64,000 nucleotides of DNA from positions 18,600,001 through 18,664,000 of the forward strand of contig NC_135253.1 of NCBI RefSeq assembly GCF_964204865.1. Reading direction: 5' to 3'. The DNA is from Styela clava. Taxonomy: Eukaryota. This document shows positions 7,301-36,845 of the stretch, piece by piece; position 1 is the first letter of the stretch; each line of letters begins with the position of its first letter. The notes under the pieces were generated by a model, which was given only the letters and a program-made list of their open reading frames with translations, was not told the origin of the DNA and searched no databases. The translations under genes were made by a program, and so were the position numbers.

Positions 7301-7755
7301 TGAAACAAATAAAGTAGTTTTATGTACAGGGATGGAGAAATAAAAAATTCCAAAATAGACGAAGAAAGAAATTTGACAAAAAGGTTGGGAAACACGGGAA
7401 ACGTTCAACATGAAATAAGTTTTGAAGAGCCAAGAGTAAAATCCATTGATCCTGTCCGATTTAAGTGAAAATAAATGCAGAAATAAATCTTACCTAATGG
7501 ATGTATCAAAGTTAAATGGTCTTCCGTCTTCGTATCTGTGGTCACGATTTCTAAAAACCGGTTCATCGATAGTTACAATAAATCCTTTGAATCCGTTTTG
7601 TTCAGCTCTTCTCACAAAATGCTCTGTTACGATACGATTCTATGAAATATTTGAATATCAATAAGCCAAATATTTGCAAATCTAGAATAGATAGAGACTT
7701 CATTTACACACATATGTATAGAAAATTTTTAACCGTCATCATTTAGGGTCTAAAG

Positions 7756-8066
7756 CAGTGGTTCCCAAACTTTTTGAGCCGCGCCTCATTTTTAGAATTA
7801 GTCAAGTCTCGCGACCAACCTCAAAAATAACTAGCTAGCAATAAGCTACAAATAACAGATAGTAAGGCGAAATTTTGTTTTATCCAACAAATACCTGTAT
7901 ATAAGGACCTCCAGAAATATGCGCACCAAGATGGCGCACAACCTGAACATAGTATGTGTGTACCGGTTAGGGTTCAGGTTGTGCGACATCTTGGTGTGCA
8001 TACTTCTGGAGCACCGTAATAAAGAATTGTTAATGAGGGACGCGTTCCGCCGTTTGAGTACCACTG
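7756..8066. mobile_element. hAT MITE in intron 3 (311 bp), shared by all array units
   Basis: Perfect TSD GTCTAAAG (7748-7755, 8067-8074). Equivalent copies at 14355-14665, 21895-22205, 28494-28804, 35190-35500, 39311-39621, 49532-49835. Absent from copy 8. Confidence 0.9.
7909..8011. repeat. About 100-bp foldback element nested in the intron-3 hAT MITE
   Basis: 40-bp arm CTCCAGAAATATGCGCACCAAGATGGCGCACAACCTGAAC pairs with GTTCAGGTTGTGCGACATCTTGGTGTGCATACTTCTGGAG. Related terminus (CATACTTCTGG) in a repeat at about 57129-57337. Confidence 0.8.
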
Positions 8067-11000
8067 GTCTAAAGATTAGACAATCGGAATGTTGTAGTTT
8101 GATATTCACAACTATTTCTATTTCCAGTATTATGTCAAACGTCGAAAAATAATAGAATGAACTGATTTTCTATAACAGAGTTTTCTTTTTTAAGAATTTC
8201 GTGCTTATTCAGTCCGTCATTGATAAACTGTTGCTTGTATTAAGACGGGGTGTTCGCCGCGTATAAATTTTTTATTATCGCAGACTTCTAAATGTAAACA
8301 CGTGTTTATTACTATTTATTTTTACAATTTACTTTTATCATACCAACCTTAGTTAATTGAAGTTGACACCATTTTATGCAGTTTGGCACCTCAGTTGCGA
8401 TCTCTTCCATAGTTTTGTTACTCCATAAACTTACTGCCATTCCTACGCCAATTGATTCGGCGGCTGAATAAAAATCATTTTATATTGTGTTTTATTGTGT
8501 GTTATTAACTCAATCTAATGTTCGAGATATATAATATTGAAAGAAATATATGCTGCAGTCTATTTACCTCTTGCAGTACAAAATTCACCTTCTGGCGCAC
8601 ACAGACGATGAAATGCCGTTGGTGCAATACATATTGGAAAAGGTACTTTCGAACCAATTACTTCTGTCGCACAATTCACTCTGCTAACGTTCTTTAAATT
8701 CCTGGGTCGAAATCGCCATCTGTGTATAATATTGCATTTGAAATATTTTTCTCATTATTTTTTGATTCATTTATCCAACAACCATAACCTAGCAGTATTG
8801 GAGCAATACTTTTAAATAATGTTTGAGAAATATTATTTTCATGAATTCTCGAAGTTTGCTCTAAATTTGAATTCATAAGATATAACTTGTGCAAAATTCG
8901 AGATAGCGCACCAAGTTAGTAGCCGTGCAAAGTGTTATAAGAGCAAAACAACAATATCAACCCAGCACATCAAGTATTCAAGTAAAAACAGAAGTAATAG
9001 GCCAAAAAAAAAACGTCAAAATGTTATTCGCCATATTAAATCGTTAATTTCCCTTTTAAATGCTTCACAATTTTCTTTTATGGTTTCTCCTCCTACAGCT
9101 CCTGCAGCAAAGTAGCCCCAATCATGTTGCGATAACTTTTTTCGAGCCTCTCCCTCATAATCGCTTACTGATAGCAATAAATTATCCATGGACAGAAGGT
9201 TTAAACTCTTCGCCAGTAAACTAAAATTGTAAGCATGTAGGAAAAGCACACACATATATAAGGGATTTACTTGCAATTCAACTCATGAGTCGACAGAATC
9301 AAAGATTCCTGGAAACAATACAATTGATTGCTTGAATTGATTAAACCTTCTCGGTAGGATTCAAAATAGGTAACAAAAAATATCAATTGCGCGAAGTCTG
9401 GATCGTCACATACAAAATCTTTCTAATCTAAAATATACATCTTACTTCTGTCTACATTTAGAATTCAACACAACCCCTGCAATGGTTATTTGAATCAGTC
9501 GACAACTGAAATCGCTATCGCAATCGCTCAACTCATTTCGAGTCCAAATTGCAACAAAAGTCAAGTGCGATTTTTTTTATCACTGCCATTACCATATCTA
9601 CTGGTGAGTTTGCGACACGTTCTAAACAAACACCGTTGTCGCCACATTGTATGTATACACTGATTCATTCAGGAAAACCATGCTTGAAGTATAAATCCAG
9701 GGAACTAACCACACTCGTTTTAACGAATGTCACACATGGCAGTGAGAAAATTCTCCAAACTAGCTGAGCTAGTTTAAGTACCAAGTTTATTGCATTGCCG
9801 TTAAAGCCTCCAATGACGTTTGAATCATGAAAGGTTCCTGTGGTTACATCTCTTGGTGATGCTCGGAGTCTTTCAAATAAATGAGCGTTTCTGTATATGC
9901 CAGACCGTCTCTGCGCACTTAAACATACTTATATATATCTGAATAAATTTTTAATCGACTCTCTGTGACACTTTCTATTCAATCTTTTTTTTTGTGTACT
10001 GTTTTTTTCACGCGTCCTTCACCCCGAAAGACTATTTTGTCTCCTATTTTACACTGTATGCATACGTCAAGTACTTTCAGTATTGATGGAAAAGAGAATT
10101 GCTGATTGACTGACGTACGTTATGTGCAGTAGATGTAGTTTTGTTAATTAGATTTCAGTTTAACTTTTATGTTTTTCAGACTTTCTTGTCGTTTAGTTTG
10201 AAGTCCTTTTTGTTTTTGTACAGTTTGGGCAGTTTATAATGTGTCCATATATAAACATATAAATATAAACTAAAAAATATTATTAGTACAACAACAAAAA
10301 CAAAATTCTTCTTTAAGTACGACTAAATTCTTCTTGGTTGGGAAAAGTGGGTTAATTTAATTGCAAGCGTTAACTAGCTAATATTGATTAACCAATTAAC
10401 CGGCTGAACTGTCTTAATTTTAAAGACGTCACAAAAACGATATGGTTTATTTAGTGTCTTGCAGCACCGTCCGCTGAAGACAAACATCGCGAAGAAAATT
10501 TTCCCACTACCTTGTGGTTCCATTACATTTGAACCCACGTACATTTGAACCCATGGCAATCGCACCTGCATACTATTGCACCTATGGAATTTTTTTTGTT
10601 TTACGGATATTTGAACCCATACTCACCCTAACCCATGGGTTTTAGCACCCGTATATATTTCAACCCGCGGATATACGCATGGGTTCAAATGTACGGTCAC
10701 CCTACGTTGTACCACTAACTCATTGTATATATATAAGACCAATTGCTGTTTCTGTATTAAACGTATATTCCCGTATAGCCATCTACCTATCCTTAAAGAC
10801 GTTTCTAAACACTCTACGTGGATAGACCGCGTAAAACTATCTATAGAAAATTGCCCTATAATAGCGCAAAGCCATAGTTCACGCTGCCCCAGGCAACAAT
10901 TATAATAAATTCAACCATTTCGACAAATCTAATGTATGTCATTTTCATATAATTATCTTTTTTTTTATCACGAATTGGCGGCCGCGATATATTTCTGTAG

Positions 11001-11340: not shown

Positions 11341-14300
11341 TCAAAGTTTCGAGAAATATCTTGTTTCGTGAACAACTATGTCTGGTGTCGTTTGCAATTC
11401 TTCTATTGTAGAAACACCTGGAAACAAATTTATATAAATGAAGCATGTTACTCGTTAGTCGCAAAATGTAGCTTACTTTGTTTCACTTTTCGGCTGGTCT
11501 GTTAGAATTTATGGTGAGGTGTACATGATCGTGATTTTCACTCGATATCTGGTAATTGAAATTTAGTGTGAATTTGATCTGTTTTAGTTACGGTATCACT
11601 TATTGCAAGTTGGTAATTTTGGCTTTTATTTGAAGTTTAGCATTGGAATCACTTTGGTTTTCTCAATAAAATTGTGAAAAACCACAAACTAATATCATGT
11701 TTTTGCATTAGGTTAAATGCCTCCAAAGCTCTTCAACGAAGTAAAACTGGAGTTGAAAAAGAAATCTTTTTCAATAGTGTTTAATTTAAGAAACAAGTTT
11801 TATTAAAAACGTTCAAACATATAGTACATACCGGAATAGCACCAATGTTGCATTATGTTATATTAGATATAAAGACTACCAACTCACCAAGAAATTGCAT
11901 GGTGTAGATAAATTCGTTTTTGAGAATTTCTAGAACATTCCTCACACCTTCTTCCCCCTGAAAGGTATTGTTTCGTTTTACTATTGTCATACCAACAAAA
12001 TATTCTACATGTCTATTAGAATACTTTGCACACTTTTTGCGAATGTAACCTTACTCTAGTTTCCGAAAGGGATGATTCTAAATAAAATCGGCCACATGTT
12101 TCACCATCGACCATCATATATAATAATAGCAAATTGGATAACTCTCGATATGTTGGCTCTCTTGAACATATATGTTAAATACAGAAATGATCTTGTTACA
12201 TACTTTGCATGCCAGTCCCCAGATTATGGGTCTTCCAACAAAAACCGCTTTTGCTCCGAGAGCGATTGCTTTTGCTATGTCTGTTCCTTTACGGATTCCT
12301 CCGTCAAAATAAACATCAACTCTGCCATTCACGGCCTTCACTACTTCTGGAAGAACATCTATCTAAAATTGTGTTCAGTAAAAATGTTCAGTTTTAAACT
12401 TGAAATTCAAGTATTTACATAGAAGATGAAAATCATGGATATGGACATAAACTTACATGGACGTGATAACACAGCAATCATTGGTATAAAATGATTTTCT
12501 GCTTTATTAAAAAATGTATTCAGCGGCAGAAAATTCACAAATGGGAATAAAAATCTTGCTTCGATTGGACTTTACGAAACAGATTTAGGTTTAAATTCTC
12601 TTCGCGAATGAAAAGACGTTAAAAGGAAAAATGATATGAACAACATGCGTTTCCTATTTTCTCTTTCATTGCTTATCGATCTCGTTCGGTAAATATGTTG
12701 ATAAGTGTTTGTCTGTCTGTTAGACTATTTCGTATGCTACGTGATATCTCACGGAAGCGAGGTTGAATTTTCTCCAAATTTCCCATGATCATTCATCATA
12801 TATCGAACCAGAAGCCTATTGATTTTGCATTGAAATATGTCGTATAGGCGAGTTATTGATTAATTAGTGATGGGACACGCGGTGTCGCTATGGAGTCAGA
12901 GAGATAGAATCGAAACCGCAGTTTCTGTTCTGGAGGATCCCCTACCTTTTGACAAAAAAACGAAAACTTGAAAGATTAAAGATTAACACAAAGTTTGTAG
13001 TTGTCGGAATATGTTAAAACATTGTGGTAACTCTTAATACATGAATCCGTCGAAGCCAGAACAGAACAATATCTGATATTTCTAACCCTCTATAGAGTCT
13101 ATATTCATGTATACTCACTGTCGCGAATGTACTATCCAATATTCGTCCGCCATGGTTTGATACAATGATTCCGTCAACCTTGTGTTCAACTGCCTTAATT
13201 GCCATTTCCGCTTAATATAAAAATAATGAAATGTTCTTCAAAGAATGTTTGTATTCAATGTTTTATCCATTTCTGGTTTCCGTATTTGCAATACAAAGCC
13301 TAGAACGTAGAATAACTTAAAATAGTTTAAAATTATAGCAATAGCTTACCTGTCAGAATTCCTTTAACCACTACAGGTAAGTCCGTAATTTCTTTCAACC
13401 AATCGATACTGTCCCATTCAACACTTCCATTCATCCAGGATTGAAACGCAGCAAATGCCGACTGGTCAGGTTCCACAATCTTGGTCGATTGTTCAATATT
13501 TCTGCTTCTAAAGTAGCCAGAACATAATTCCACTTAAACGAGTTTAAATGCTCAGTATCTAATTGATGGCATTGCGATTTTGGGTAATTATCAGCGTGTG
13601 TGCAGTTTACAAATTTGTGTCGTCATGTTTTGAGGGCCTGACTTTTTGTGCTCGATTTTGTGCACTTTTTGTAAACTCAAATATTTCGATTTTAGGATAG
13701 TTTCTACGTTGTGAAACCTCGCTTGTGAACCAACGTTTCCCACTCCTTAAGAAATTCCTTTCAGTGAGGAATGTTAACCGTTTTTGGAGAATAATTTTGG
13801 TATGTACTATCACTATGATATGTATTCACGAACACATAATAAACTACACAAAACGGGCGTACGACTTGCGCATAACTATAGCAAAGGATCCATTAAAAAT
13901 GAAACAAATGAAGTAGTTTTATGTACAGGGATGGAGGAATGAAAAATTCCAAAATAGACGAAGAAAGAAATTTGACAAAAAGGTTGGGAAACACGGGAAA
14001 CGTTCAACGTGAAATAAGTTTTGAAGAGCCAAGAGTAAAACCCATTGATCCTGTCCGATTTAAGTGAAAATAAAGGCAGAAATAAATCTTACCTAATGGA
14101 TGTATCAAAGTTAAATAGTCTTCCGTCTTCGTATCTGTGGTCACGATTTCTAAAAACCGGTTCATCGATAGTTACAATAAATCCTTTGAATCCGTTTTGT
14201 TCAGCTCTTCTCACAAAATGCTCTGTTACGATACGATTCTATGAAATATTTGAATATCAATAAGCCAAATATTTGCAAATCTAGAATAGATAGAGACTTC

Positions 14301-15786
14301 ATTTACACACATATGTATAGAAAATTTTTAACCGTCATCATTTAGGGTCTAAAGCAGTGGTTCCCAAACTTTTTGAGCCGCGCCTCATTTTTAGAATTTG
14401 TCAAGTCTCGCGACCAACCTCAAAAATAACTAGCTAGCAATAAGCTACAAATAACAGATAGTAAGGCGAAATTTTGTTTTATCCAACAAATACCTGTATA
14501 AAGGGACCTCCAGAAATATGCGCACCAAGATGGCGCACAACCTGAACATAGTATGTGTGTACCGGTTGGGGTTCAGGTTGTGCGACATCTTGGTGTGCAT
14601 ACTTCTGGAGCACCGTAATAAAGAATTGTTAATGAGGGACGCGTTCCGCCGTTTGAGTACCACTGGTCTGAAGATTAGACAATCGGAATGTTGTAGTTTG
14701 AAATTCACAACTATTTCTATTTCCAGTATTATGTCAAACGTCGAAAAATAATAGAATGAACTGATTTTCTATAACAGAGTTTTCTTTTTTAAGAATTTCG
14801 TGCTTATTCAGTCCGTCATTGATAAACTGTTGCTTGTATTAAGACGGGGTGTTCGCCGCGTATAAATTTTTTATTATCGCAGACTTCTAAATGTAAACAC
14901 GTGTTTATTACTATTTATTTTTACAATTTACTTTTTTCATACCAACCTTAGTAAATTGAAGTTGACACCATTTTATGCAGTTTGGCACCTCAGTTGCGAT
15001 TTCTTCCATAGTTTTGTTACTCCATAAACTTACTGCCATTCCTACGCCAATTGATTCGGCGGCTGAATAAAAATCATTTTATATTGTGTTTTATTGTGTG
15101 TTATTAACTCAATCTAATGTTCGAGATATATAATATTGAAAGAAATATATGCTGCAGTCTATTTACCTCTTGCAGTACAAAATTCACCTTCTGGCGCACA
15201 CAGACGATGAAATGCCGTTGGTGCAATACATATTGGAAAAGGTATTTTCGAACCAATTACTTCTGTCGCACAATTCACTCTGCTAACGTTCTTTAAATTC
15301 CTGGGTCGAAATCGCCATCTGTGTATAATATTGCATTTGAAATATTTTTCCCATTATTTTTTGATTCATTTATCCAACAACCATAACCCAGCAGTATTGA
15401 AGCAATACTTTTAAATAATGTTTGAGAAATATTATTTTCATGAATTCTTGAAGTTTGCTCTAAATTTGAATTCAAAAGATATAACTTGTGCAAAATTCGA
15501 GATAGCGCACCAAGTTAGTAGCCGTGTCAAGTGTTATAAGAGCAAAACAACGATATCAACCCAGCACATCAAGTATTCAAGTAAAAACAGAAGTAATAGG
15601 CCAAAAAAAAACGTCAAAATGTTATTCGCCATATTAAATCGTTAATTTCCCTTTTAAATGCTTCACAATTTTCTTTTATAGTTTCTCCTCCTACAGCTCC
15701 TGCAGCAAAGTAGCCCCAACCATGTTGCGATAACTTTTTTCGAGCCTCTCCCTCATAATCGCTACTGATAGCAATAAATTATCCAT
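11341..15786 (-). pseudogene. HAO1: Hydroxyacid oxidase-like copy 3, frameshifted
   Basis: All 9 exons present, but 1-nt deletion in exon 1 at about 15763 (gctactg versus gcttactg). An in-frame TAA upstream blocks rescue by another start. Same lesion in copy 5. Confidence 0.85.
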
Positions 15787-17934: not shown

Positions 17935-20900
17935 TCAAAGTTTCGAGAAATATCTTGTTTCGTGAACAACTATGTCTGGTGTCGTTTGCAATTCTTCTAT
18001 TGTAGAAACTCCTGGAAAAAAAATAATATAAATGAAGCATGTTACTCGTTAGTTGCAAAATGTAGCTTACTTTGTTTCACTTTTCGGCTGGTCTGTTAGA
18101 ATTTATGGTGAGGTGTACATGATCGTGATTTTCACTCGCTATCTGGTAATTGAAATTTAGTGTGAATTTGATCTGTTTTAGTTACGGTATCACTTATTGC
18201 AAGTTGGTAATTTTGGCTGTTATTTGAAGTTTAGCATTGGAATCACTTTGGTTTTCTCAATAAAATTGTGAAAACCACCAACTAATATCATGTTTATGCA
18301 TTAGGTTAAATGCCTCCAAAGCTCTTCAACGAAGTAAAACTGGAGTTGAAAAAGAAATCTTTGTCAATAGTGTTTAATTTAAGTAACAAGTTTTATTAAA
18401 AACGTTCAAACATGTAGTACATACCGGAATAGCACCAATGTTGCATTATGTTATATTAGGTATAAAGACTACCAACTCACCAAGAAATTGCATGGTGAAG
18501 ATAAATTCGTTTTTGAGAATTTCTAGAACATTCCTCACACCTTCTTCCCCCTGAAAGGTATTGTTTCGTTTTACTATTGTCATATCAACAAAATATTCCA
18601 CATGTCTATTAGAATACTTTGCACTAATTTCAGGAAAAATTCAATTTTTGCAAATGTAATTTTACTCTAGTTTCCGAAAGGGATGATCCTAAAATAAAAT
18701 CGGCCACATGTTTCACCATCGACCATCATATATAATAATAGCAAATTGGATAACTCTCGGTATGTTGGCTCTCTTGAAAATATATGTTAAATACAGAAAT
18801 GATCTTGTTACAAACTCTGCATGCCAGTCCCCAGATTATGGGTCTTCCAACGAAAACCGCTTTTGCTCTGAGAGCGATTGCTTTTGCTACGTCTGTTCCT
18901 TTACGGATTCCTCCGTCAAAATAAACATCAACTCTGCCATTCACGGCCTTCACTACTTCTGGAAGAACGTCTATCTAAAATTAATGTCCAGTTTTAAACA
19001 TGAAACTTCATGAGTTTACATAGGAGATGCAAATCATGGATATGGACATAAACTTACATGGACGTGATAACATAACAATCATTGGTATAAAATGATCTTC
19101 AGCTTTGTTAAAAAATGTATTCAGCGGCAGAAAATTCACAAATGGGAATTATAATCTTGCTTCGATTGGACTTTACAATACAGATTTAGATTTAAACTCT
19201 CATCGCGAATGAAAAGACGTCAAAAAGAAAAATGATATGAACAACATGCGTTTCCTATTTTCTCTTTCATTACTTATCGATCTCGATCGGTAAATATGTT
19301 GATAAGTATTTGTCTGTCTGTTCGTTTGTCTGTTAGACTATTTCGTATGCTACATGATATCTCACGAAAGCGAGGTTGAATCTGCTCCAAATTTTGCATG
19401 ATCATTCATCATAGCTCGAATCGGAAGCCTATTGATTTTTCATGAAATATGTCGTATAAGCGAGTTATTAATTAATTATGGGACACGCGATGTCGCTATT
19501 GGGTCAGAGCGATAGAATCGAAACCGCAGTTTCTGTTCTGGAGGATCCCCTAAATTTCGTCGCTGCGAACGATTGTGTGCGATCGATAAGTCGGCGGTCT
19601 CCGATCGCTATTCTCGTTATTTCAGTTGATTAAAAGCAATCAATCACAATAGCTAAAAGTTATAAGACAAAAAAAACAAAAACTTGAAAGATTAAAGATT
19701 AAAACAGAGTTTGTAGTTGTCAAAACATTGTGGTAAATCTTAATACATGAAGCTGTCGAAGCCAGAACAGAACAATATCTGATATTTCTCACCCTCTATA
19801 GCAGTGGTCTTAAACTGGGTTCGATCGAACCCCTGGGGTTCGGTGGAGCTGTTCCAGGGGTGCGACGAAGGTGCTCTGAAACAGTTGCATATTATGAGAC
19901 TTTTTTATCACCCTGCATACTTATTATGCAAAAATAACTATAGTTCATGATGACTAATTACTAATGACTTGAACAATTGAATGAAACAATTAATTGGTGT
20001 TACCCTTATTCATATTCTACCGTACTAATAAAATTTAACTCAATTTTACGGATAAATCGAAGATAGGCAGTACATGAATGAATGCAAAATCAGAGCGTGT
20101 TTGAATTTCACTAGGTGATAAATTTGCGACAAGGAATAGTTTATCGCAGAGCTTTATCCGAAATTATTATGATCCATTCAGGACAACCTCGATATGGCGC
20201 CGAATTAATCCTATCTCTATTTTTGTAAAATAAAACAATTGGCAAACGATTTTATTCGCATTTCAGCGCAGTTTAAAATTTGAGAACAAATTGCTTGAAC
20301 TACCAACGTTTATGGAGTATATTATCATCTTTCGGATTTTCAAAGTTATTTTTTATCAGTTTTCGCCGGTTCACCAGCAAAACTTATACAACAAAAACCA
20401 TCTGCTCTTTCTGCCGCCAACGCCATTGTGACAAAACAATGGTTATTGATATCTAAGGTTTCATCACAATGTTCATATTCTATAACCTTGCAAGAATTAG
20501 CTTCCGCTTTATAACGTTACAGTTTGGCTTCTAATTTCAACCGTTCAGTACGATAGGGTTCGGCGGGAGCTTGCAGAATAGCGCAGGGGTTCGGCAGGCT
20601 CACAAAGATTAAGAACCACTGCTCTATAGTCTATAGAGTCTATATTCATGTATACTCACTGTCGCGAATGTACTATCCAATATTCGTCCACCATGGTTTG
20701 AGACAATGATTCCGTCAACCTTATGTTCAACTGCCTTAATTGCCATTTCCGCTTTTAATATAAAAATAATGAAAAGTTCTTTAAAAAATGTTGGTATTCA
20801 ATGTTTTATCCATTTATATTTTTCTTATTTGCAATACAAAGCCTAGAACGTATAATAACTTAGAATAGTTTAAAATCATAACCGTAGCCTACCTGTTAGA

Positions 20901-23328
20901 ATTCCTTTAACCACTACAGGTAAGTCCGTAATTTCTTTCAACCAATCGATACTGTCCCATTCAACACTTCCATTCATCCAGGATTGAAACGCAGCAAATG
21001 CCGACTGGTCAGGTTCCACAATCTTGGTCGATTGTTCAATATTTCTGCTTCTAAAGTAGCCAGAACATAATTCCACTTAAACGAGTTTAAATGCTCAGTA
21101 TCTAATTGATGGCATTGTGATTCTGGGTCATTATCAGCGTGTGTGCAGTTTACAAATTTGTGTCGGCATGTTTCGAGAGCCTGACTTTTTGTGCTCGATT
21201 TTGTGCACTTTTTGTAAACTCAAATATTTTAATTTTAGGATAGTTTCTACGTTGTGAAACCTCGCTTGTGAACCAACGTTTCCCACTCCTTAAGAAATTC
21301 CTTTCAGTGAGGAATGTTAACCGTTTTTGGAGAATAATTTTGGTATGTACTATCACTATGATATGTATTCACGAACACATAATAAACTGCACAAAACGGG
21401 CGTACGACTTGCGCATAACATTAGCAAAGGAATCAATAAAAATGAAATAAAAGTAGTTTGATGTACAGGGATGTAGAAATAAAAAATTCCAAAATAGACG
21501 AAGAAAGAAATTTGACAAAAAGGTTGGGAAATACGGGAAACGTTCAACGTGAAATAAGTTTTGAAGAGCCAAGAGTAAAATCCATTGATCCTGTCCGATT
21601 TAAGTGAAAATAAATGCAGAAATAAATCTTACCTAATGGATGTATCAAAGTTAAATGGTCTTCCGTCTTCGTATCTGTGATCACGATTTCTAAAAACCGG
21701 TTCATCGATAGTTACAATAAATCCTTTGAATCCGTTTTGTTCAGCTCTTCTCACAAAATGCTCTGTTACGATACGATTCTATGAAATATTTGAATATCAA
21801 TAAACCAAATATTTGCAAATCTAGAATAGATAGAGACTTTAAATACATACATATGTATAGAAAATTTTTAACCGTCATCATTTAGGGTCTAAAGCAGTGG
21901 TTCTCATACTTTTTGAGCCGCGAGAATTTTTTAGATTTTGTCAAGTCTCGCGACCAACCTCAAAAATAACTAGCTAGCAATAAGCTACAAATAGCAGATA
22001 GTAAGGCGAAATTATGTTTTATCCAACAAATACGTGTATAAAGGGACCTCCAGAAATATGCGCACCAAGATGGCGCACAACCTGAACATAGTATGTGTGT
22101 ACCGGCTAGGGTTCCGGTTGTGCGACATATTGGTGTGCATACTTCTGGAGCACCGTAATAAAGAATTGGTAATGAGGGACGCGTTCCGCCGTTTGAGTAC
22201 CACTGGTCTGAAGATTAGACAATCGGAATGTTGTAGTTTGATATTCACAACTATTTCTATTTCCAGTATTATGTCAAACGTCGAAAAATAATAGAATGAA
22301 CTGATTTTCTATAACAGAGTTTTCTTTTTTAAGAATTTCGTGCTTATTCAGTCCGTCATTGATAAACTGTTGCTTGTATTAAGACGGGGTGTTCGCCGCG
22401 TATAAATTTTTTATTATCGCAGTATTCTAAATGTAAACACGTGTTTATTACTATTTATTTTTACAATTTACTTTTTTCATACCAACCTTAGTTAATTGAA
22501 GTTGACACCATTTTATGCAGTTTGGCACCTCAGTTGCGATCTCTTCCATAGTTTTGTTACTCCATAAACTTACTGCCATTCCTACGCCAATTGATTCGGC
22601 GGCTGAATAAAAATCATTTCATATTGTGTTTTATTGTGTGTTATTAACTCAATCTAATGTTCGAGATATATAATATTGAAAAAAATATATGCCGCAGTCT
22701 ATTTACCTCTTGCAGTACAAAATTCACCTTCTGGCGCACACAGACGATGAAATGCCGTTGGTGCAATACATATTGGAAAAGGTACTTTCGAACCAATTAC
22801 TTCTGTCGCACAATTCACTCTGCTAACGTTCTTTAAATTCCTGGGTCGAAATCGCCATCTGTGTATAATATTGCATTTGAAATATTTTTCTCATTATTTT
22901 TTGATTCATTTATCCAACAACCATAACCCAGCAGTATTGAAGCAATACTTTTAAATAATGTTTGAGAAATATTATTTTCATGAATTCTCGAAGTTTGCTC
23001 TAAATTTGAATTCATAAGATATAACTTATGCAAAATTCGAGATAGCGCACCAAGTTAGTAGCCGTGTCAAGTGTTATAAGAGCAAAACAACAATATCCAC
23101 CCAGCACATCAAGTATTCAAGTAAAAACAGAAGTAATAGGCCAAAAAAAAAACGTCAAAATGTTATTCGCCATATTAAATCGTTAATTTCCCTTTTAAAT
23201 GCTTCACAATTTTCTTTTATAGTTTCTCCTCCTACAGCTCCTGCAGCAAAGTAGCCCCAATCATGTTGCGATAACTTTTTTCGAGCCTCTCCCTCATAAT
23301 CGCTTACTGATAGCAATAAATTATCCAT
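17935..23328 (-). CDS. HAO1: Hydroxyacid oxidase-like copy 4, full-length about 368 aa peroxisomal FMN-dependent alpha-hydroxy acid oxidase
   Basis: Exons 23192-23328, 22707-22858, 22487-22602, 21633-21778, 20893-21050, 20660-20751, 18816-18974, 18481-18550, 17935-18011 (137/152/116/146/158/92/159/70/77 nt) give one ORF ending RYFSKL*. Motifs [27 protein letters not shown] present. Needs the GG donor at intron 1. Carries ALGA>ALRA (18867-18869). Confidence 0.88.
19270..19618 (+). mobile_element. DINE-1/HINE-like non-autonomous Helentron derivative in intron 6
   Basis: 5' subTIR ACTTATCGATC with palindrome, (GTCT)n tract, 3' subTIR GATCGATAAGT followed by hairpin TCGGCGGTCTCCGA; T-rich site, no TSD. 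Equivalents at 1-112, 6378-6619, 12668-12948, 26808-27088, 33412-33760, 46020-47810 (approximate). Empty site in copy 8 (about 61420-61460). Confidence 0.75.
19802..20621. mobile_element. 820-bp non-autonomous hAT element unique to copy 4 intron 6
   Basis: Termini CAGTGGTCTTAAACT / AGATTAAGAACCACTG, subterminal GGGTTCG repeats, TSD CTCTATAG (19794-19801, 20622-20629). Empty site in other units. Confidence 0.92.
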
Positions 23329-25479: not shown

Positions 25480-28400
25480 TCAAAGTTTCGAGAAATATTT
25501 TGTTTCGTGAACAACTATGTCTGGTGTCGTTTGCAATTCTTCTATTGTAGAAACACCTGGAAACAAATTTATATAAATGAAGCATGTTACTCGTTAGTCG
25601 CAAAATGTAGCTTACTTTGTTTCACTTTTCGGCTGGTCTGTTAGAATTTATGGTGAGGTGTACATGATCGTGATTTTCACTCGATATCTGGTAATTGAAA
25701 TTTAGTGTGAATTTGATCTGTTTTAGTTACGGTATCACTTATTGCAAGTTGGTAATTTTGGCTTTTATTTGAAGTTTAGCATTGGAATCACTTTGGTTTT
25801 CTCAATAAAATTGTGAAAAACCACAAACTAATATCATGTTTTTGCATTAGGTTAAATGCCTCCAAAGCTCTTCAACGAAGTAAAACTGGAGTTGAAAAAG
25901 AAATCTTTTTCAATAGTGTTTAATTTAAGAAACAAGTTTTATTAAAAACGTTCAAACATATAGTACATACCGGAATAGCACCAATGTTGCATTATGTTAT
26001 ATTAAATATAAAGACTACCAACTCACCAAGAAATTGCATGGTGTAGATAAATTCGTTTTTGAGAATTTCTAGAACATTCCTCACACCTTCTTCCCCCTGA
26101 AAGGTATTGTTTCGTTTTACTATTGTCATACCAACAAAATATTCTACATGTCTATTAGAATACTTTGCACACTTTTTGCGAATGTAACCTTACTCTAGTT
26201 TCCGAAAGGGATGATTCTAAATAAAATCGGCCACATGTTTCACCATCGACCATCATATATAATAATAGCAAATTGGATAACTCTCGATATGTTGGCTCTC
26301 TTGAACATATATGTTAAATACAGAAATGATCTTGTTACATACTTTGCATGCCAGTCCCCAGATTATGGGTCTTCCAACAAAAACCGCTTTTGCTCCGAGA
26401 GCGATTGCTTTTGCTATGTCTGTTCCTTTACGGATTCCTCCGTCAAAATAAACATCAACTCTGCCATTCACGGCCTTCACTACTTCTGGAAGAACATCTA
26501 TCTAAAATTGTGTTCAGTAAAAATGTTCAGTTTTAAACTTGAAATTCAAGTATTTACATAGAAGATGAAAATCATGGATATGGACATAAACTTACATGGA
26601 CGTGATAACACAGCAATCATTGGTATAAAATGATCTTCTGCTTTATTAAAAAATGTATTCAGCGGCAGAAAATTCACAAATGGGAATAAAAATCTTGCTT
26701 CGATTGGACTTTACGAAACAGATTTAGGTTTAAATTCTCTTCGCGAATGAAAAGACGTTAAAAGGAAAAATGATATGAACAACATGCGTTTCCTATTTTC
26801 TCTTTCATTGCTTATCGATCTCGTTCGGTAAATATGTTGATAAGTGTTTGTCTGTCTGTTAGACTATTTCGTATGCTACGTGATATCTCACGGAAGCGAG
26901 GTTGAATTTGCTCCAAATTTCCCATGATCATTCATCATATATCGAACCAGAAGCCTATTGATTTTGCATTGAAATATGTCGTATAGGCGAGTTATTGATT
27001 AATTAGTGATGGGACACGCGGTGTCGCTATGGAGTCAGAGAGATAGAATCGAAACCGCAGTTTCTGTTCTGGAGGATCCCCTACCTTTTGACAAAAAAAC
27101 GAAAACTTGAAAGATTAAAGATTAACACAAAGTTTGTAGTTGTCGGAATATGTTAAAACATTGTGGTAACTCTTAATACATGAATCCGTCGAAGCCAGAA
27201 CAGAACAATATCTGATATTTCTAACCCTCTATAGAGTCTATATTCATGTATACTCACTGTCGCGAATGTACTATCCAATATTCGTCCGCCATGGTTTGAT
27301 ACAATGATTCCGTCAACCTTGTGTTCAACTGCCTTAATTGCCATTTCCGCTTAATATAAAAATAATGAAATGTTCTTCAAAGAATGTTTGTATTCAATGT
27401 TTTATCCATTTCTGGTTTCCGTATTTGCAATACAAAGCCTAGAACGTAGAATAACTTAAAATAGTTTAAAATCATAGCAATAGCTTACCTGTCAGAATTC
27501 CTTTAACCACTACAGGTAAGTCCGTAATTTCTTTCAACCAATCGATACTGTCCCATTCAACACTTCCATTCATCCAGGATTGAAACGCAGCAAATGCCGA
27601 CTGGTCAGGTTCCACAATCTTGGTCGATTGTTCAATATTTCTGCTTCTAAAGTAGCCAGAACATAATTCCACTTAAACGAGTTTAAATGCTCAGTATCTA
27701 ATTGATGTCATTGCGATTTTGGGTCATTATCAGCGTGTGTGCAGTTTACAAATTTGTGTCGTCATGTTTTGAGGGCCTGACTTTTTGTGCTCGATTTTGT
27801 GCACTTTTTGTAAACTCAAATATTTCGATTTTAGGATAGTTTCTACGTTGTGAAACCTCGCTTGTGAACCAACGTTTCCCACTCCTTAAGAAATTCCTTT
27901 CAGTGAGGAATGTTAACCGTTTTTGGAGAATAATTTTGGTATGTACTATCACTATGATATGTATTCACGAACACATAATAAACTACACAAAACGGGCGTA
28001 CGACTTGCGCATAACTATAGCAAAGGATCCATTAAAAATGAAACAAATGAAGTAGTTTTATGTACAGGGATGGAGGAATGAAAAATTCCAAAATAGACGA
28101 AGAAAGAAATTTGACAAAAAGGTTGGGAAACACGGGAAACGTTCAACGTGAAATAAGTTTTGAAGAGCCAAGAGTAAAACCCATTGATCCTGTCCGATTT
28201 AAGTGAAAATAAAGGCAGAAATAAATCTTACCTAATGGATGTATCAAAGTTAAATGGTCTTCCGTCTTCGTATCTGTGGTCACGATTTCTAAAAACCGGT
28301 TCATCGATAGTTACAATAAATCCTTTGAATCCGTTTTGTTCAGCTCTTCTCACAAAATGCTCTGTTACGATACGATTCTATGAAATATTTGAATATCAAT

Positions 28401-29925
28401 AAGCCAAATATTTGCAAATCTAGAATAGATAGAGACTTCATTTACACACATATGTATAGAAAATTTTTAACCGTCATCATTTAGGGTCTAAAGCAGTGGT
28501 TCCCAAACTTTTTGAGCCGCGCCTCATTTTTAGAATTTGTCAAGTCTCGCGACCAACCTCAAAAATAACTAGCTAGCAATAAGCTACAAATAACAGATAG
28601 TAAGGCGAAATTTTGTTTTATCCAACAAATACCTGTATAAAGGGACCTCCAGAAATATGCGCACCAAGATGGCGCACAACCTGAACATAGTATGTGTGTA
28701 CCGGTTGGGGTTCAGGTTTTGCGACATCTTGGTGTGCATACTTCTGGAGCACCGTAATAAAGAATTGTTAATGAGGGACGCGTTCCGCCGTTTGAGTACC
28801 ACTGGTCTGAAGATTAGACAATCGGAATGTTGTAGTTTGAAATTCACAACTATTTCTATTTCCAGTATTATGTCAAACGTCGAAAAATAATAGAATGAAC
28901 TGATTTTCTATAACAGAGTTTTCTTTTTTAAGAATTTCGTGCTTATTCAGTCCGTCATTGATAAACTGTTGCTTGTATTAAGACGGGGTGTTCGCCGCGT
29001 ATAAATTTTTTATTATCGCAGACTTCTAAATGTAAACACGTGTTTATTACTATTTATTTTTACAATTTACTTTTTTCATACCAACCTTAGTTAATTGAAG
29101 TTGACACCATTTTATGCAGTTTGGCACCTCAGTTGCGATCTCTTCCATAGTTTTGTTACTCCATAAACTTACTGCCATTCCTACGCCAATTGATTCTGCG
29201 GCTGAATAAAAATCATTTTATATTGTGTTTTATTGTGTGTTATTAACTCAATCTAATGTTCGAGATATATAATATTGAAAGAAATATATGCTGCAGTCTA
29301 TTTACCTCTTGCAGTACAAAATTCACCTTCTGGCGCACACAGACGATGAAATGCCGTTGGTGCAATACATATTGGAAAAGGTATTTTCGAACCAATTACT
29401 TCTGTCGCACAATTCACTCTGCTAACGTTCTTTAAATTCCTGGGTCGAAATCGCCATCTGTGTATAATATTGCATTTGAAATATTTTTCCCATTATTTTT
29501 TGATTCATTTATCCAACAACCATAACCCAGCAGTATTGAAGCAATACTTTTAAATAATGTTTGAGAAATGTTATTTTCATGAATTCTTGAAGTTTGCTCT
29601 AAATTTGAATTCAAAAGATATAACTTGTGCAAAATTCGAGATAGCGCACCAAGTTAGTAGCCGTGTCAAGTGTTATAAGAGCAAAACAACGATATCAACC
29701 CAGCACATCAAGTATTCAAGTAAAAACAGAAGTAATAGGCCAAAAAAAAACGTCAAAATGTTATTCGCCATATTAAATCGTTAATTTCCCTTTTAAATGC
29801 TTCACAATTTTCTTTTATAGTTTCTCCTCCTACAGCTCCTGCAGCAAAGTAGCCCCAACCATGTTGCGATAACTTTTTTCGAGCCTCTCCCTCATAATCG
29901 CTACTGATAGCAATAAATTATCCAT
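25480..29925 (-). pseudogene. HAO1: Hydroxyacid oxidase-like copy 5, frameshifted, near-identical to copy 3
   Basis: Same exon-1 1-nt deletion (about 29902) and same intronic deletions as copy 3, offset 14,139 bp. Confidence 0.85.
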
Positions 29926-32900
29926 GGACAGAAGGTTTAAACTCTTCGCCAGTAAACTAAAATTGTAAGCATGTAGGAAAAGCACACACATATATAAGGG
30001 ATTTATTTGCAATTCAACTCATGAGTCGACAGAATCAAAGATTCCCGGAAACAATACAATTGATTGCTTGAATTGATTAAACCTTCTCGGTAGGATTCAA
30101 AATAGGTAACAAAAAATATCAATTGCGCGAAATCTGGATCGTCACATACAAAATCTTTCTAATCTAAAATATACATCTTACTTCTGTCTACATTTAGAAT
30201 TCAACACAACCCCTGCAATGGTTATTTGAATCAGTCGACAACTGAAATCGCTATCGCAATCGCGCAACTCATTTCGAGTCCAAATTGCAACAAAAGTCAA
30301 GTGCGATTTTTTTTATCACTGCCATTACCATATCTACTGGTGAGTTTGCGACACGTTCTAAACAAACACCGTTGTCGCCACATTGTATGTATACACTGAT
30401 TCATTCAGGAAAACCATGCTTGAAGTATAAATCCAGGGAACTAACCACACTCGTTTTAACGAATGTCACACATGGCAGTGAGAAAATTCTCCAAACTAGC
30501 TGAGCTAGTTTAAGTACCAAGTTTATTGCATTGCCGTTAAAGCCTCCAATGACGTTTGAATCATGAAAGGTTCCTGTGGTTACATCTCTTGGTGATGCTC
30601 GGAGTCTTTCAAATAAATGAGCGTTTCTGTATATGCCAGACCGTCTCTGCGCACTTAAACATACTTATATATATCTGAATAAATTTTTATTCGACTCTCT
30701 GTGACACTTTCTATTCAATCTTTTTTTCGTGTACTGTTTTTTTCACGCGTCCTTCACCCCGAAAGACTATTTTGTCTCCTATTTTACACTGTATGAATAC
30801 GTTAAGTACTTTCAGTATTGATGGAAAAGAGAATTGCTGATTGACTGACGTACGTTATGTGCCGTAGATGTAGTTTTGTTAATTAGATTTCAGTTTAACT
30901 TTTATGTTTTTCAGACTTTCTTGTCGTTTAGTTTGAAGTCCTTTTTGTTTTTGTACAGTTTGGGCAGTTTATAATGTGTCCATATATAAACATATAAATA
31001 TAAACTAAAAAATATTATTAGTACAACAACCAAAACAAAATTCTTCTTTAAGTACGACTAAATTCTTCTTGTTTGGGAAAAGTGGGTTAAGTTAATTGCA
31101 AGCGTTAACTAGCTAATATTGATTAACCAATTAACCGGCTGAACTGTCTTAATTTTAAAGACGCCACAAAAACGATATGGTTTATTTAGTGTCTTGCAGC
31201 ACCGTCCGCTGAAGACAAACATCGCGAAGAAAATTTTCCCACTACCTTGTGGTTCCATTACATTTGAACCCACGTACATTTGAACCCATGACAATTGCAC
31301 CTGCATACTATTGCACCTATGGAATTTTTTTTGTTTTACGGATATTTGAACCCATACTAACCCTAACCCATGGGTTTTAGCACCCGTATATAGATTCAAC
31401 CCGCGGATATACGCATGGGTTCAAATGTACGGTCACCCTACGTTGTACCACTAACTCATTGTATATATATAAGACCAACTGCTGTTTCTGTATTAAACGT
31501 ATATTCCCGTATAGCCATCTACCTAACCTTAAAGACGTTTCTAAACACTCTACGTGGATAGACCGCGTAAAACTATCTATAGAAAATTGCCCTATAATAG
31601 CGCAAAGCCATAGTTCACGCTGCCCCAGGCAACAGTTATAATAAATTCAACCATTTCGACAAATCTAATGTATGTCATTTTTATATAATTATCTTTTTTT
31701 TTATCACGAATTGGCGGCCGCGATATATTTCTGTAGTATTGAATTAGAATGTCAAAAACTCCCACATTGATTTATTACGCATCATATCCTTTCTTTGTTC
31801 TGTGTGGGATTCACGTCTTGCAGTGCAAGCAGAAAACGAACGCTTCGGGACTTACCCTCGCTATACTAGATTTGTTACTATGATGTCATAATTTGGCCTT
31901 GTACTAACTTATCAATTATCGACATTTTTCTTTGTCGAATAATAAACTGTAACTTTGCAATGTACTGGCGATGTAATTAAAGACTTCACAAAAAATATTA
32001 ATATCAGCATTTGCGCAAATCATATCGACCAATTTATCAATTTCTGCATATTTATTATGTCCTGGAGAAATTTAATTCAAAGTTTCGAGAAATATCTTGT
32101 TTCGTGAACAACTATGTCTGGTGTCGTTTGCAATTCTTCTATTGTAGAAACACCTGGAAACAAATTTATATAAATGAAGCATGTTACTCGTTAGTTGCAA
32201 AATGTAGCTTACTTTGTTTCACTTTTCGGCTGGTCTGTTAGAATTTATGGTGAGGTGTACATGATCGTGATTTTCACTCGCTATCTGGTAATTGAAATTT
32301 AGTGTGAATTTGATCTGTTTTAGTTACGGTATCACTTATTGCAAGTTGGTAATTTTGGCTGTTATTTGAAGTTTAGCATTGGAATCACTTTGGTTTTCTC
32401 AATAAAATTGTGAAAAACCACCAACTAATATCATGTTTTTGCATTAGGTTAAATGCCTCCAAAGCTCTTCAACGAAGTAAAACTGGAGTTGAAAAAGAAA
32501 TCTTTGTCAATAGTGTTTAATTTAAGAAACAAGTTTTATTAAAAACGTTCAAACATGTAGTACATACCGGAATAGCACCAATGTTGCATTATGTTATATT
32601 AGGTATAAAGACTACCAACTCACCAAGAAATTGCATGGTGTAGATAAATTCGTTTTTGAGAATTCCTAGAACATTCCTCACACCTTCTTCCCCCTGAAAG
32701 GTATTGTTTCGTTTTACTATTGTCATATCAACAAAATATTCAACATGTTTATTAGAATACTTTGCACTAATTTCAGGAAAAATTCACTTTTTGCAAATGT
32801 AATTTTACTCTAGTTTCCGAAAGGGATGATCCTAAAATAAAATCGGCCACATGTTTCACCATCGACCATCATATATAATAATAGCAAATTGGATAACTCT

Positions 32901-35900
32901 CGGTATGTTGGCTCTCTTGAAAATATATGTTAAATACAGAAATGATCTTGTTACAAACTTTGCATGCCAGTCCCCAGATTATGGGTCTTCCAACAAAAAC
33001 CGCTTTTGCTCCGAGAGCGATTGCTTTTGCTACGTCTGTTCCTTTACGGATTCCTCCGTCAAAATAAACATCAACTCTGCCATTCACGGCCTTCACTACT
33101 TCTGGAAGAACGTCTATCTAAAATTAATGTCCAGTTTTAAACATGAAACTTCATGAGTTTACATAGGAGATGCAAATCATGGATATGGACATAAACTTAC
33201 ATGGACGTGATAACATAACAATCATTGGTATAAAATGATCTTCAGCTTTGTTAAAAAATGTATTCAGCGGCAGAAAATTCACAAATGGGAATTATAATCT
33301 TGCTTCGATTGGACTTTACAATACAGATTTAGATTTAAACTCTCATCGCGAATGAAAAGACGTCAAAAAGAAAAATGATATGAACAACATGCGTTTCCTA
33401 TTTTCTCTTTCATTACTTATCGATCTCGATCGGTAAATATGTTGATAAGTATTTGTCTGTCTGTTCGTTTGTCTGTTAGACTATTTCGTATGCTACGTGA
33501 TATCTCACGAAAGCGAGGTTGAATCTGCTCCAAATTTTGCATGATCATTCATCATAGCTCGAATCAGAAGGCTATTGATTTTTCATGAAATATGTCGTAA
33601 AAGCGAGTTATTAATTAATTATGGGACACGTGATGTCGCTATTGGGTCAGAGCGATAGAATCGAAACCGCAGTTTCTGTTCTGGAGGATCCCCTAATTTT
33701 CGTCGCTGCGAACGATTGTGTGCGATCGATAAGTCGGTGGTCTCCGATCGCTATTCTCGTTATTTCGGTTGATTAAAAGCAATCAATCACAATAGCTAAA
33801 AGTTATAAGACAAAAAAACAAAAACTTGAAAGATTAAAGATTAAAACAGAGTTTGTAGTTGTCAAAACATTGTGGTAAATCTTAATACATGAAGCTGTCG
33901 AAGCCAGAACAGAACAATATCTGATATTTCTCACCATCTATAGAGTCTATATTCATGTATACTCACTGTCGCGAATGTACTATCCAATATTCGTCCGCCA
34001 TGGTTTGAGACAATGATTCCGTCAACCTTATGTTCAACTGCCTTAATTGCCATTTCCGCTTTTAATATAAAAATAATGAAAAGTTCTTTAAAGAATGTTG
34101 GTATTCAATGTTTTATCCATTTATAATTTTCTTATTTGCAATACAAAGCCTAGAACGTATAATAACTTAGAATAGTTTAAAATCATAACCATAGCTTACC
34201 TGTTAGAATTCCTTTAACCACTACAGGTAAGTCCGTAATTTCTTTCAACCAATCGATACTGTCCCATTCAACACTTCCATTCATGCAGGATTGAAACGCA
34301 ACAAATGCCGACTGGTCAGGTTCCACAATCTTGGTCGATTGTTCAATATTTCTGCTTCTAAAGTAGCCAGAACATAATTTCACTTAAACGAGTTTAAATG
34401 CTCAGTATCTAATTGTTGGCATTGCGATTTTGGGTAATTATCAGCGTGTGTGCAGTTTACAAATTTGTGTCGTCATGTTTTGAGAGCCTGACTTTGTGCA
34501 CTTTTTGTAAACTCAAATATTTTGATTTTAGGATAGTTTCTACGTTGTGAAACCTCGCTTGTGAACCAACGTTTCCCACTCCTTAAGAAATTCCTTTCAG
34601 TGAGGAATGTTAACCGTTTTTGGAGAATAATTTTGGTATGTACTATCACTATGATATGTATTCACGAACACATAATAAACTACACAAAACGGGCGAGCGA
34701 CTTGCACATAACTATAGCAAAGGATCCATTAAAAAAGAAACAAATGAAGTAGTTTTATGTACAGGGATGGGGAAATAAAAAATTCCAAAATAGACGAAGA
34801 AAGAAATTTGACAAAAAGGTTGGGAAATACGGGAACGTTCAACGTGAAATAAGTTTTGAAGAGCCAGGAGTAAAACCCATTGATCCTGTCCGATTTAAGT
34901 GAAAATAAATGCAGAAATAAATCTTACCTAATGGATGTATCAAAGTTAAATGGTCTTCCGTCTTCGTATCTGTGGTCACGATTTCTAAAAACCGGTTCAT
35001 CGATAGTTACAATAAATCCTTTGAATCCGTTTTGTTCAGCTCTTCTCACAAAATGCTCTGTTACGATACGATTCTATGAAATATTTGAATATCAATAAGC
35101 CAAATATTTGCAAATCTAGAATAGATAGAGACTTCATTTACACACATATGTATAGAAAATTTTTAACCGTCATCATTTAGGGTCTAAAGCAGTGATTCCC
35201 AAACTTTTTGAGCCGCGCCTCATTTTTAGAATTAGTCAAGTCTCGCGACCAACCTCAAAAATAACTAGCTAGCAATAAGCTACAAATAACAGATAGTAAG
35301 GCGAAATTTTGTTTTATCCAACAAATACCTGTATATAGGGACCTCCAGAAATATGCGCACCAAGATGGCGCACAACCTGAACATAGTATGTGTGTACCGG
35401 TTAGGGTCCAGGTTGTGCGACATCTTGGTGTGCATACTTCTGGAGCACCGTAATAAAGAATTGTTAATGAGGGACGCGTTCCGCCGTTTGAGTACCACTG
35501 GTCTGAAGATTAGACAATCGGAATGTTGTAGTTTGATATTCACGACTATTTCTATTTCCAGTATTATGTCAAACGTCGAAAAATAATAGAATGAACTGAT
35601 TTTCTATAACAGAGTTTTCTTTTTTAAGAATTTCGTGCTTATTCAGTCCGTCATTGATAAACTGTTGCTTGTATTAACTCTTCGCGCCCTGAGCCGCACT
35701 ATAATACGGATGGCGAGAAACACCACCAACCTGAACCGCAGTAAATTGCGGGTAAAATATGACGTCATATCTCCGCTTCAACGGGCACGAGGCATACGAT
35801 CTTGGTATCAATCGTTAGTGTGTTTCGAGCCCGTTATTATGAGCTATCGCTCGAACCATTCGAGCGTATTGGGCGATTTAAAGGGTGTTCCCCTTTTTTG

Positions 35901-36228
35901 ATATTTTTCTGCTTTTTTCTCTGCAGTTGTATGTTTGTTCATTGAAAATTGAAGCTCGTAAACCACCAAAAATAGCTAGGGAACATTCGTTCTTTGTTTT
36001 GAGACTTCAGAGTAGACTTTGGACTATTCATTTGTCGTCGACACAGGGAATAGTGTTTATGACTGCGGACGAGAATCGTCTTTTTATTATTGTTATGCAG
36101 TTATTATTATGTTTTTTTGTTATTATGCAGTTGATTTCGGTTCTAAAGGGATATTGTTATATAAGACGTATTTGTAAGTTTATTAGGATTCTGGTAGCTA
36201 TAAATCAGACAAGGTACCGTAATGGAGA

Positions 36229-36734
36229 ATGAGAGCGATTTTGATGCAAGGTAAGTGCAATACCTGCATGCATTCTTCTGCTATTTTTTAAAAAAAATTT
36301 TCTTTATATTCTGAGAAAATGATAGTTTGTAAGCTGACTGTGGCAATTGTTTGAGCAAGCCTCATAGCTTGGACTTGTTATTAGTAATAATCCAGTCGTT
36401 AATCAACGCAATTTTTCTTTTAGTTCTGGTGACGAGTGAGTCATCTAGCTCCGATGAAGAGGTTGTCCCAGTCCCAGCTAGGCGCTATGCTGCAAGCACT
36501 GAAGATGTACCAGCTGAAGCAGCAGCGTCAACGGGCGGAATGTTCGGAGCTTCGAGCCCTCGGCGATCACGAGTTTGCAGGGTGTGTTCTGAACGGGACA
36601 AAAAAGAAAGAGAAGGCAGTAGCAGAAAATTGAAACAAAAAAGGTCTTCATATTGGTGTGAGAAATGCCAGGTAACACTTTGTGTTACCCCGTGTTTCGA
36701 GAAGTTTCACACCCTCCCAAACTATTGGGAATAG
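36229..36734 (+). CDS. Spliced mini-ORF (about 110 aa): acidic N-terminal stretch plus piggyBac C-terminal zinc-ribbon, no catalytic domain
   Basis: Exon 36229-36250, GT-AG intron 36251-36423, exon 36424-36734: MRAILMQ-VLVTSESSSSDEE...CRVC...YWCEKCQVTLCVTPCFEKFH. Start choice uncertain. Confidence 0.6.
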
Positions 36735-36764
36735 GAATCAAAACTTATGTGCAATATTGTGATG

Positions 36765-36845
36765 TTGACTTTATCAGAGACTGTGATTTTTGTTGACTTT
36801 GCCAGAGACTGTGATTTTTGTTGACTTTGTCAGAGACTGATTTTT
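36765..36845. repeat. 28-bp tandem repeat (about 3 copies) 3' of the piggyBac ORF
   Basis: GTTGACTTT(A/G)(T/C)CAGAGACTGTGATTTTT repeated. Confidence 0.8.

Follow-up and report, generated by a model that had tools for sequence, protein, structure and literature searches.

A young tandem array of hydroxyacid oxidase-like genes in Styela clava with glutamine at the position of the substrate-binding tyrosine

We analyzed a 64,000-nucleotide (nt) stretch of the Styela clava genome (NC_135253.1, positions 18,600,001 to 18,664,000 of the forward strand; hereafter the window, to whose positions coordinates refer unless another contig is named) that carries a tandem array of nine-exon genes related to peroxisomal, flavin mononucleotide (FMN)-dependent 2-hydroxy-acid oxidases. 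In every copy, the tyrosine that corresponds to Tyr132 of human HAO1 is replaced by glutamine; residue numbers are those of human HAO1 throughout. The explanation that best accounts for the whole, to which we assign a probability of roughly 0.6 from sequence evidence, is that these genes are a young birth-and-death array within a larger lineage (referred to as Q-type) that would be active and constrained and would have a reshaped substrate pocket.

The substitution lies in exon 3 of array copy D:

Exon 3 of copy D: 22487..22602, minus strand, HAO1-equivalent residues 98-135; Gln132 codon CAA at 22496-22498 (TTG on the plus strand)

The minus-strand translation of 22487-22600 ends in WCQLQLTK, and the exon borders match joints in RNA contigs (21778->22487 and 22602->22707). 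A phmmer alignment of the 38-residue exon to HAO1 residues 99-133 was gapless and placed the glutamine on Tyr132. The motif QLQ was found in 8/8 array copies of exon 3 and HVQ in the inverted paralog I (57016-57024), in agreement with the earlier note on this DNA, so the canonical Tyr of the Tyr/His dyad is missing from all nine exon-3 copies in the window. The counterparts of this Tyr are Y129 in plant glycolate oxidase, Y254 in flavocytochrome b2 and Y128 in p-hydroxymandelate oxidase. The same note had described a gapless alignment to HAO1 through R167 with the catalytic residues kept, and this was borne out by the 368-amino-acid (aa) protein XP_077968164.1 (P0003, copy A), which aligned to HAO1 with E=1.4e-99 and the same numbering up to R167. 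Residues Y26, W110, D160, R167, the Lys of VVKG, and the His and Arg of SNHGGR were retained, and Y132 was replaced by Q132. As judged from these alignments, the Q-type proteins are members of the FMN_dh family by descent, yet deviate from the canonical active site.

The gene model of copy D was built from reading frames and splice signals, with the following features:

Array copy D: 17935..23328, minus strand, nine exons, coding sequence of 1107 nt, SKL end; RefSeq model P0124
Exons 1 to 3 of copy D: 23192-23328, 22707-22858 and 22487-22602, minus strand
Exons 4 to 6 of copy D: 21633-21778, 20893-21050 and 20660-20751, minus strand
Exons 7 to 9 of copy D: 18816-18974, 18481-18550 and 17935-18011, minus strand

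Profile searches were made exon by exon, and full-length comparisons used annotated database proteins. Six of the nine exons matched Pfam FMN_dh (PF01070), and five of these matches exceeded the curated cut-off of 24.9 bits; exons 2, 5, 6 and 7 scored 31-77 bits and exon 4 fell just under the cut-off at 23.6 bits. Exon 3 searched alone against Pfam gave no match, being too short. PF01070 is carried by P0003, and a six-frame FMN_dh search of the genome recovered the window exons. RefSeq models of 368 and 390 aa agree with the nine-exon model, and P0003 has the same exon structure. The FMN-contacting Lys (HAO1 K236) is followed by Gly in all array copies (VVKG) and by Arg in paralog I of this assembly (KR). 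Exon 9 encodes an SKL end resembling a type 1 peroxisomal targeting signal (PTS1) in copies B, C, D, E, F/G, H and I; the earlier statement that SKL is kept therefore holds for these copies and fails for copy A. A triosephosphate isomerase (TIM)-barrel fold with bound FMN is predicted from the ~46% identity to solved HAO1 structures.

Evidence for splicing and transcription, which applies to the array copies, came from three RNA-like runs of three studies, in which unique intron stretches had zero depth and contigs joined exon to exon. All eight model introns were seen as contig joints at the predicted positions; the exon 8/exon 9 joint sits 3 nt off with one mismatch, an alignment ambiguity. 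None of these joints was present in the Styela clava DNA run X10, in which the introns were evenly covered. Intron 1 has an unusual pair of ends, with these donors:

Intron 1 donor GG: 23190..23191, minus strand, the same in all array copies
Intron 1 donor GA of paralog I: 55903-55904, plus strand, from the alignment

The GG-AG intron 1 is spliced exactly, as the joint 22858->23192 (ends CT..CC) occurs in runs X1 and X3 and is absent from X10. The missing GT was therefore dismissed as a mark of a pseudogene, and no other donor/acceptor pair for this intron preserved the frame. An alternative exon 3/4 junction (GTATGA donor, minus 4 residues) was ruled out by the joint 21778->22487 and by the RefSeq models. 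A retrocopy as the origin of the joined forms was likewise ruled out, given the DNA run without joints and a genome without an intronless Q-type copy. In X1 the predominant transcript bears the variants peculiar to F/G at 20978, 20994 and 22750 and is thus of that type, X2 carries the Lys variant of the A/H type, and an exon 5->exon 7 joint in X3 fits copy B or skipping of exon 6.

To place the array within the genome, loci were collected from the six-frame FMN_dh search. This search found ~19 multi-exon HAO-like loci (8 in the window, 7 on contig C14, 2 on C10, 1 on C13 and 1 on C16). It also recovered intronless sequences, namely five full-length HAO open reading frames (ORFs) and two copies that are broken or partial. 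The loci that bear on the origin of the substitution are:

Intronless ORFs L001-L005: C18:3.99-4.02 Mb (three in tandem), C16:13.39 Mb and C9:16.38 Mb
Q-type tandem clusters on C14: L033-L037 at 8.82-8.88 Mb and L031-L032 at 7.65-7.68 Mb, with WCHLQ or WCHIQ

Gln132 is shared by all 11 of the multi-exon loci that lie beyond the window, in the context WCH[ILV]Q or WCQVQ. The canonical QLY genes that the earlier note had asked about were found elsewhere in the genome as four of the five full-length intronless ORFs, the fifth (L004) having QLH. In a maximum-likelihood tree, the Q-type proteins formed one clade with a Shimodaira-Hasegawa-like approximate likelihood ratio test (SH-aLRT) support of 100 and a stem length of 0.41; its sister group is the QLY clade of intronless Styela genes, and the pair is nested among tunicate HAOs. 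A single Q-type clade with a Tyr-bearing sister implies one Tyr to Gln event, long before the array. The intronless copies were probably retroposed and would have kept the ancestral Tyr, the intron-bearing lineage having diverged. The proposal that the substitution is a fixed lineage feature and not decay is upheld by its presence in all array copies, in paralog I and in the 11 other multi-exon loci, and by the clade support. That it is shared by an old paralog and a young array also stood, but the change is older and far wider than that pair, extending to ~19 loci.

The clade is called Styela-specific here in the sense that no other species was found for it among the best 120 database hits. 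A search of exon 3 against 1.84 billion representatives returned two matches, both from Styela, one of which is the 368-aa protein P0001; the closest relatives of P0001 are annotated as ‘hydroxyacid oxidase 1-like [Styela clava]’, and the genes are thus already annotated as HAO1-like. Literature searches on Styela or ascidian hydroxyacid oxidase found no publication.

Glutamine at this site is rare. Among 108 homologs outside the clade, the residue is Tyr in 101, Gln in 2, and Asn, Ile, Phe and His once each, with one gap; the concern that Gln might be common in ordinary HAOs is thereby answered. The two outside cases, in which Gln132 arose independently, are Ixodes scapularis P0018 and an unnamed European Nucleotide Archive (ENA) protein, P0019, whose close sisters keep Tyr. 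Within the Q-type clade, S108, T158, D160, R167, the Lys-Gly pair, His and Arg are present in 11/11 proteins, and the catalytic set (HAO1 H260, D160, R167 and R263) is invariant across the same 11. Cys129 occurs in 11/11, His130 in 9/11 and Gln/Glu161 in 9/11. Of the 14 Gln132 proteins, 11 have Glu or Gln at residue 161, as against none of 106 others; the DEPVF motif of the array recurs in the tick protein P0018. We treat a coupling between Gln132 and residue 161 as a lead and not as proof, with two independent events only. The AEMA motif, which the earlier note had listed as a lineage change from AEDA, is indeed present; it also occurs in Tyr-bearing Styela paralogs and is not diagnostic of the Q-type lineage. 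Many Q-type members end in SKL or AKL.

Synonymous (dS) and nonsynonymous (dN) divergence was calculated from Nei-Gojobori counts summed exon by exon. Array copies compared with paralog I gave a dS of ~0.25, a dN of ~0.065 and a dN/dS of 0.22-0.35 (copy D versus I, Fisher p=3e-10). Comparisons among copies A, D and H gave a dN/dS of 0.15-0.18, with Fisher p <3e-4 for all three pairs; those among the youngest copies, B, C and E, involve 1-5 changes only and carry no weight. The suggested comparison of array and paralog therefore came out well away from a ratio near 1 and is accompanied by spliced transcripts in three studies: the Q-type lineage is under purifying selection, transcribed and spliced. 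Inside the array dS is 0.006-0.09, against 0.25 to paralog I, and the array is a terminal burst within the Q-type clade.

Self-comparison of the window resolved seven minus-strand units of ~6.6 kb (A-H, with F/G as one) and the inverted plus-strand paralog I. The copies and their state, other than copy D, are as follows:

Copy A, exons 1-6: 334..2894, minus strand; exon 3 at 2067-2182; exons 7-9 left of the window; full ORF of 368 aa
Copy B: 5027..9189, minus strand; exon 3 at 8348-8463; +1 frameshift in exon 5 (6750-6908); exon 6 down to 14 nt (6617-6630)
Copy C: 11341..15786, minus strand; exon 3 at 14947-15062; 1-nt deletion in exon 1 (15651-15786), shifting the frame at codon 9
Copy E: 25480..29925, minus strand; exon 3 at 29086-29201; exon 1 (29790-29925) with the same 1-nt deletion as copy C
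Copy F/G: 32077..42562, minus strand; exon 1 at 42426-42562; exons 2-5 present twice; exon 6 at 33967-34058; exon 9 at 32077-32153
Exon 3 of copy F/G, two copies: 41722-41837 and 37601-37716, minus strand
Tandem duplication in F/G: 34145..42386, no strand assigned; 4121 bp at 100% identity (34145-38265 = 38266-42386)
Insertions of 1.8 kb in intron 3 of F/G: 35677-37497 and 39798-41618; piggyBac-type zinc-finger ORF (PF13842, E=2.9e-5)
Copy H: 44685..50961, minus strand; exon 3 at 50120-50235; exon 7 donor GT->TC (below 45567)
Inverted paralog I: 55766..62739, plus strand, nine exons
Exons 1 to 3 of paralog I: 55766-55902, 56675-56826 and 56918-57033, plus strand
Exons 4 to 6 of paralog I: 57655-57800, 58072-58211 and 61182-61273, plus strand
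Exons 7 to 9 of paralog I: 61735-61893, 62138-62207 and 62663-62739, plus strand

Copy B is a pseudogene that has lost the catalytic His and Arg with exon 6, and its RefSeq product (P0126) ends at 235 aa. The RefSeq product of copy E (P0125, 264 aa) starts only at Met105, and that of F is N-truncated, also at 264 aa. The repeated exons 2-5 of F/G total 572 nt, a length not divisible by 3, and so are out of frame; the 4121-bp duplication must be of very recent date if it did not arise as an artefact of assembly. Read-through at the altered exon 7 donor of copy H costs the C-terminal ~45 residues and SKL, and RefSeq P0123 continues into the intron. Paralog I, as assembled here, has an AT donor at exon 5 and Arg in place of the Gly that follows the FMN Lys (KG->KR, 58205-58213), a Gly kept in 120/120 homologs; its RefSeq product (P0129) ends at 235 aa, and an intact form of 362 aa that keeps KG (P0005) is found in an older assembly. 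These lesions look like a null allele that varies between individuals. The older Styela assembly contains intact 368-aa array proteins as well as the intact 362-aa paralog I, and at least some lesions therefore appear to differ between individuals. XP_039259965.1 exemplifies an intact Q-type protein of 368 aa with an SKL end. The earlier note's amplification of at least 8-fold is accurate for DNA and does not carry over to functional dosage, as most copies are damaged.

Three side observations were made. Copy A ends in LKL, and a relative in an older assembly ends in LKH. In paralog I, the exon 7 acceptor is changed from AG to AA (region 61268-61745), where a 4-nt slide of donor and acceptor could keep the frame (Ile->Val). 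The intronic stretches 19188-19555 and 21948-22131 of copy D are very high-copy repeats, with a depth in the DNA run (summed contigs) of 34,000-226,000 versus ~80-130 for unique sequence; an Rfam scan of copy D, including these two repeats, gave no match.

We propose the following sequence of events. The window would hold a young tandem birth-and-death array of seven ~6.6-kb minus-strand units and one older inverted paralog, part of a clade of nine-exon, Styela clava-specific genes that resemble peroxisomal FMN-dependent 2-hydroxy-acid oxidases. At the base of this clade, the Tyr132 that binds the substrate hydroxyl would have become Gln, and pocket neighbors would have shifted as well, to Cys129 in all members and to His130 and Glu/Gln161 in most, with the hydride/proton machinery, the FMN binders and the carboxylate binders invariant. 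Intact members most likely still bind FMN and oxidize a carboxylate-bearing 2-hydroxy acid in peroxisomes, and the reshaped pocket may have changed substrate preference, the handling of the keto-acid product, or both. The ancestral Tyr-type activity would be left to the intronless paralogs at other sites of the genome. An active peroxisomal FMN enzyme is the most likely product because the catalytic set is intact, purifying selection and expression are seen, and members end in SKL or AKL. From the alignments we infer retained catalysis and altered specificity, and the SKL/AKL ends predict the peroxisomal location. The different substrate and the H2O2 production put forward in the earlier note are conjecture, and the sequence would fit a change in substrate, in rate or in oxidation level.

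Several observations weigh against this proposal. Every copy in this assembly has some flaw: disruptions affect B, C, E, H and I, and the out-of-frame internal duplication of F/G would be disruptive unless it arose in assembly or is left out when the transcript is spliced. Copy D has a full-length ORF but carries Gly303->Arg, in a codon whose first base lies at 18869; the site is Gly in 119/120 homologs, and the other individuals compared have Gly (G) there. Copy A ends in LKL, not SKL (exon 9, left of the window; L015:620-714), and products ending in LKL or LKH may have lost peroxisomal import. The Logan contigs give no expression levels and no firm assignment of transcripts to copies, and catalysis by the Q-type proteins is a prediction for every member. 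In characterized relatives, mutation of the Tyr lowers turnover (references 42-43 of PMC10153336); PMC10153336 cites the classical work on the Y254F and Y254L mutants of flavocytochrome b2.

The biochemistry of p-hydroxymandelate oxidase (Hmo) bears on the alternatives. The Tyr of the conserved Tyr/His dyad hydrogen-bonds the alpha-hydroxyl of the substrate (PMC6677016), and when Hmo Y128, R163, H252 and R255 were mutated, activity was left only in Y128F (PMC6677016). That mutant is a four-electron oxidative decarboxylase in which H2O2 release is inverse to product (PMC6677016), so that losing the Tyr hydroxyl can reduce H2O2 release (PMC6677016). By analogy, the Gln132/Glu161 clade might have switched its reaction outcome to a similar four-electron oxidative decarboxylation, resembling that of lactate monooxygenase, with the keto acid held and little free H2O2; we consider this improbable. 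If true, ascidian peroxisomes would possess a novel pathway, multiplied in gene number, that converts 2-hydroxy acids to chain-shortened acids, and the combination of Gln132 and Glu161 in the tick would mark a recurrent natural solution.

Two further explanations dispense with a changed pocket function. The chemistry may have stayed the same and only its deployment changed, with Gln132 replacing Tyr as the hydrogen-bond partner in ordinary glycolate/2-hydroxy-acid oxidases that were multiplied for dosage or tissue-specific expression. The other catalytic residues are all intact, glutamine should on chemical grounds be able to donate a hydrogen bond, and the substrate affinity of Hmo was kept in Y128F (Km of 0.15 vs 0.13 mM; PMC6677016). 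We nevertheless hold unchanged chemistry to be unlikely, though worth keeping in view, given that 101 of the 108 other homologs have Tyr, that the clade has its long stem of 0.41 with coupled changes at 129, 130, 161 and 163, and that QLY genes persist separately in the genome with a conservation of their own. Alternatively, the clade may be decaying or catalytically dead, its members weak or non-enzymatic relics and the array mostly transcribed, useless pseudogenes. Five of the eight copies are disrupted here, a near-invariant Gly is altered as well in two copies, the X3 joint suggests skipping of exon 6, and Tyr mutants of relatives are slow according to references in PMC10153336. Such decay is disfavored by a dN/dS of 0.15-0.35, which is not near 1, and by catalytic residues that are invariant across 11 paralogs differing by up to ~40-45%; the intact 368-aa and 362-aa forms in another assembly and the persistence through ~19 duplications point the same way, and we give this explanation very little credence. 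An active Q-type lineage with a reshaped pocket would thus remain our preferred explanation.

A conserved Tyr/His pair has been regarded as characteristic of FMN-dependent 2-hydroxy-acid oxidases, and here a clade of ~19 genes, expressed and constrained, has Gln instead. The clade offers a natural experiment on which property this Tyr governs, be it substrate range, turnover or the choice between a two- and a four-electron outcome. To students of tunicates, it represents a large lineage-specific expansion of a predicted peroxisomal oxidase. Genes arise and decay quickly in the array, and its null alleles appear to vary from one individual to another.

Among known systems, the closest is human HAO1/plant glycolate oxidase (GOX; EC 1.1.3.15), to which the array proteins are ~46% identical over 347 residues (E=1.4e-99) and with which they share Y26, W110, D160, R167, the FMN Lys, the equivalents of His260 and Arg263, and a C-terminal PTS1-like SKL. 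They differ from HAO1 by Tyr132->Gln, Cys at 129, Thr161->Glu, Tyr163->Val and Gly165->Arg, by Gln264->Ile in the array subclade, and by a diverged loop 4. The Styela intronless QLY paralogs (L001-L003 and L005; RefSeq ‘hydroxyacid oxidase 1-like/2-like’) belong to the same genome and the sister clade and have AEMA and SRL-type ends in common with the Q-type genes; unlike these they keep QLY and DTP and are without introns, three of the intronless ORFs lying in tandem on C18 and L004 having His at the Tyr site. Hmo Y128F (PDB 5zzx series) resembles the Q-type proteins in that the equivalent Tyr hydroxyl is lost, His and Arg stay, and the mutant is still active (PMC6677016), but there the Phe was introduced by engineering into a bacterial enzyme. 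Ixodes scapularis P0018 and ENA P0019 have a natural Tyr132->Gln, accompanied in the tick by Glu161, Val163 and Phe164 (DEPVF); unlike the Q-type clade, they are single paralogs that form no large clade and keep Gln130 and the RQ after His.

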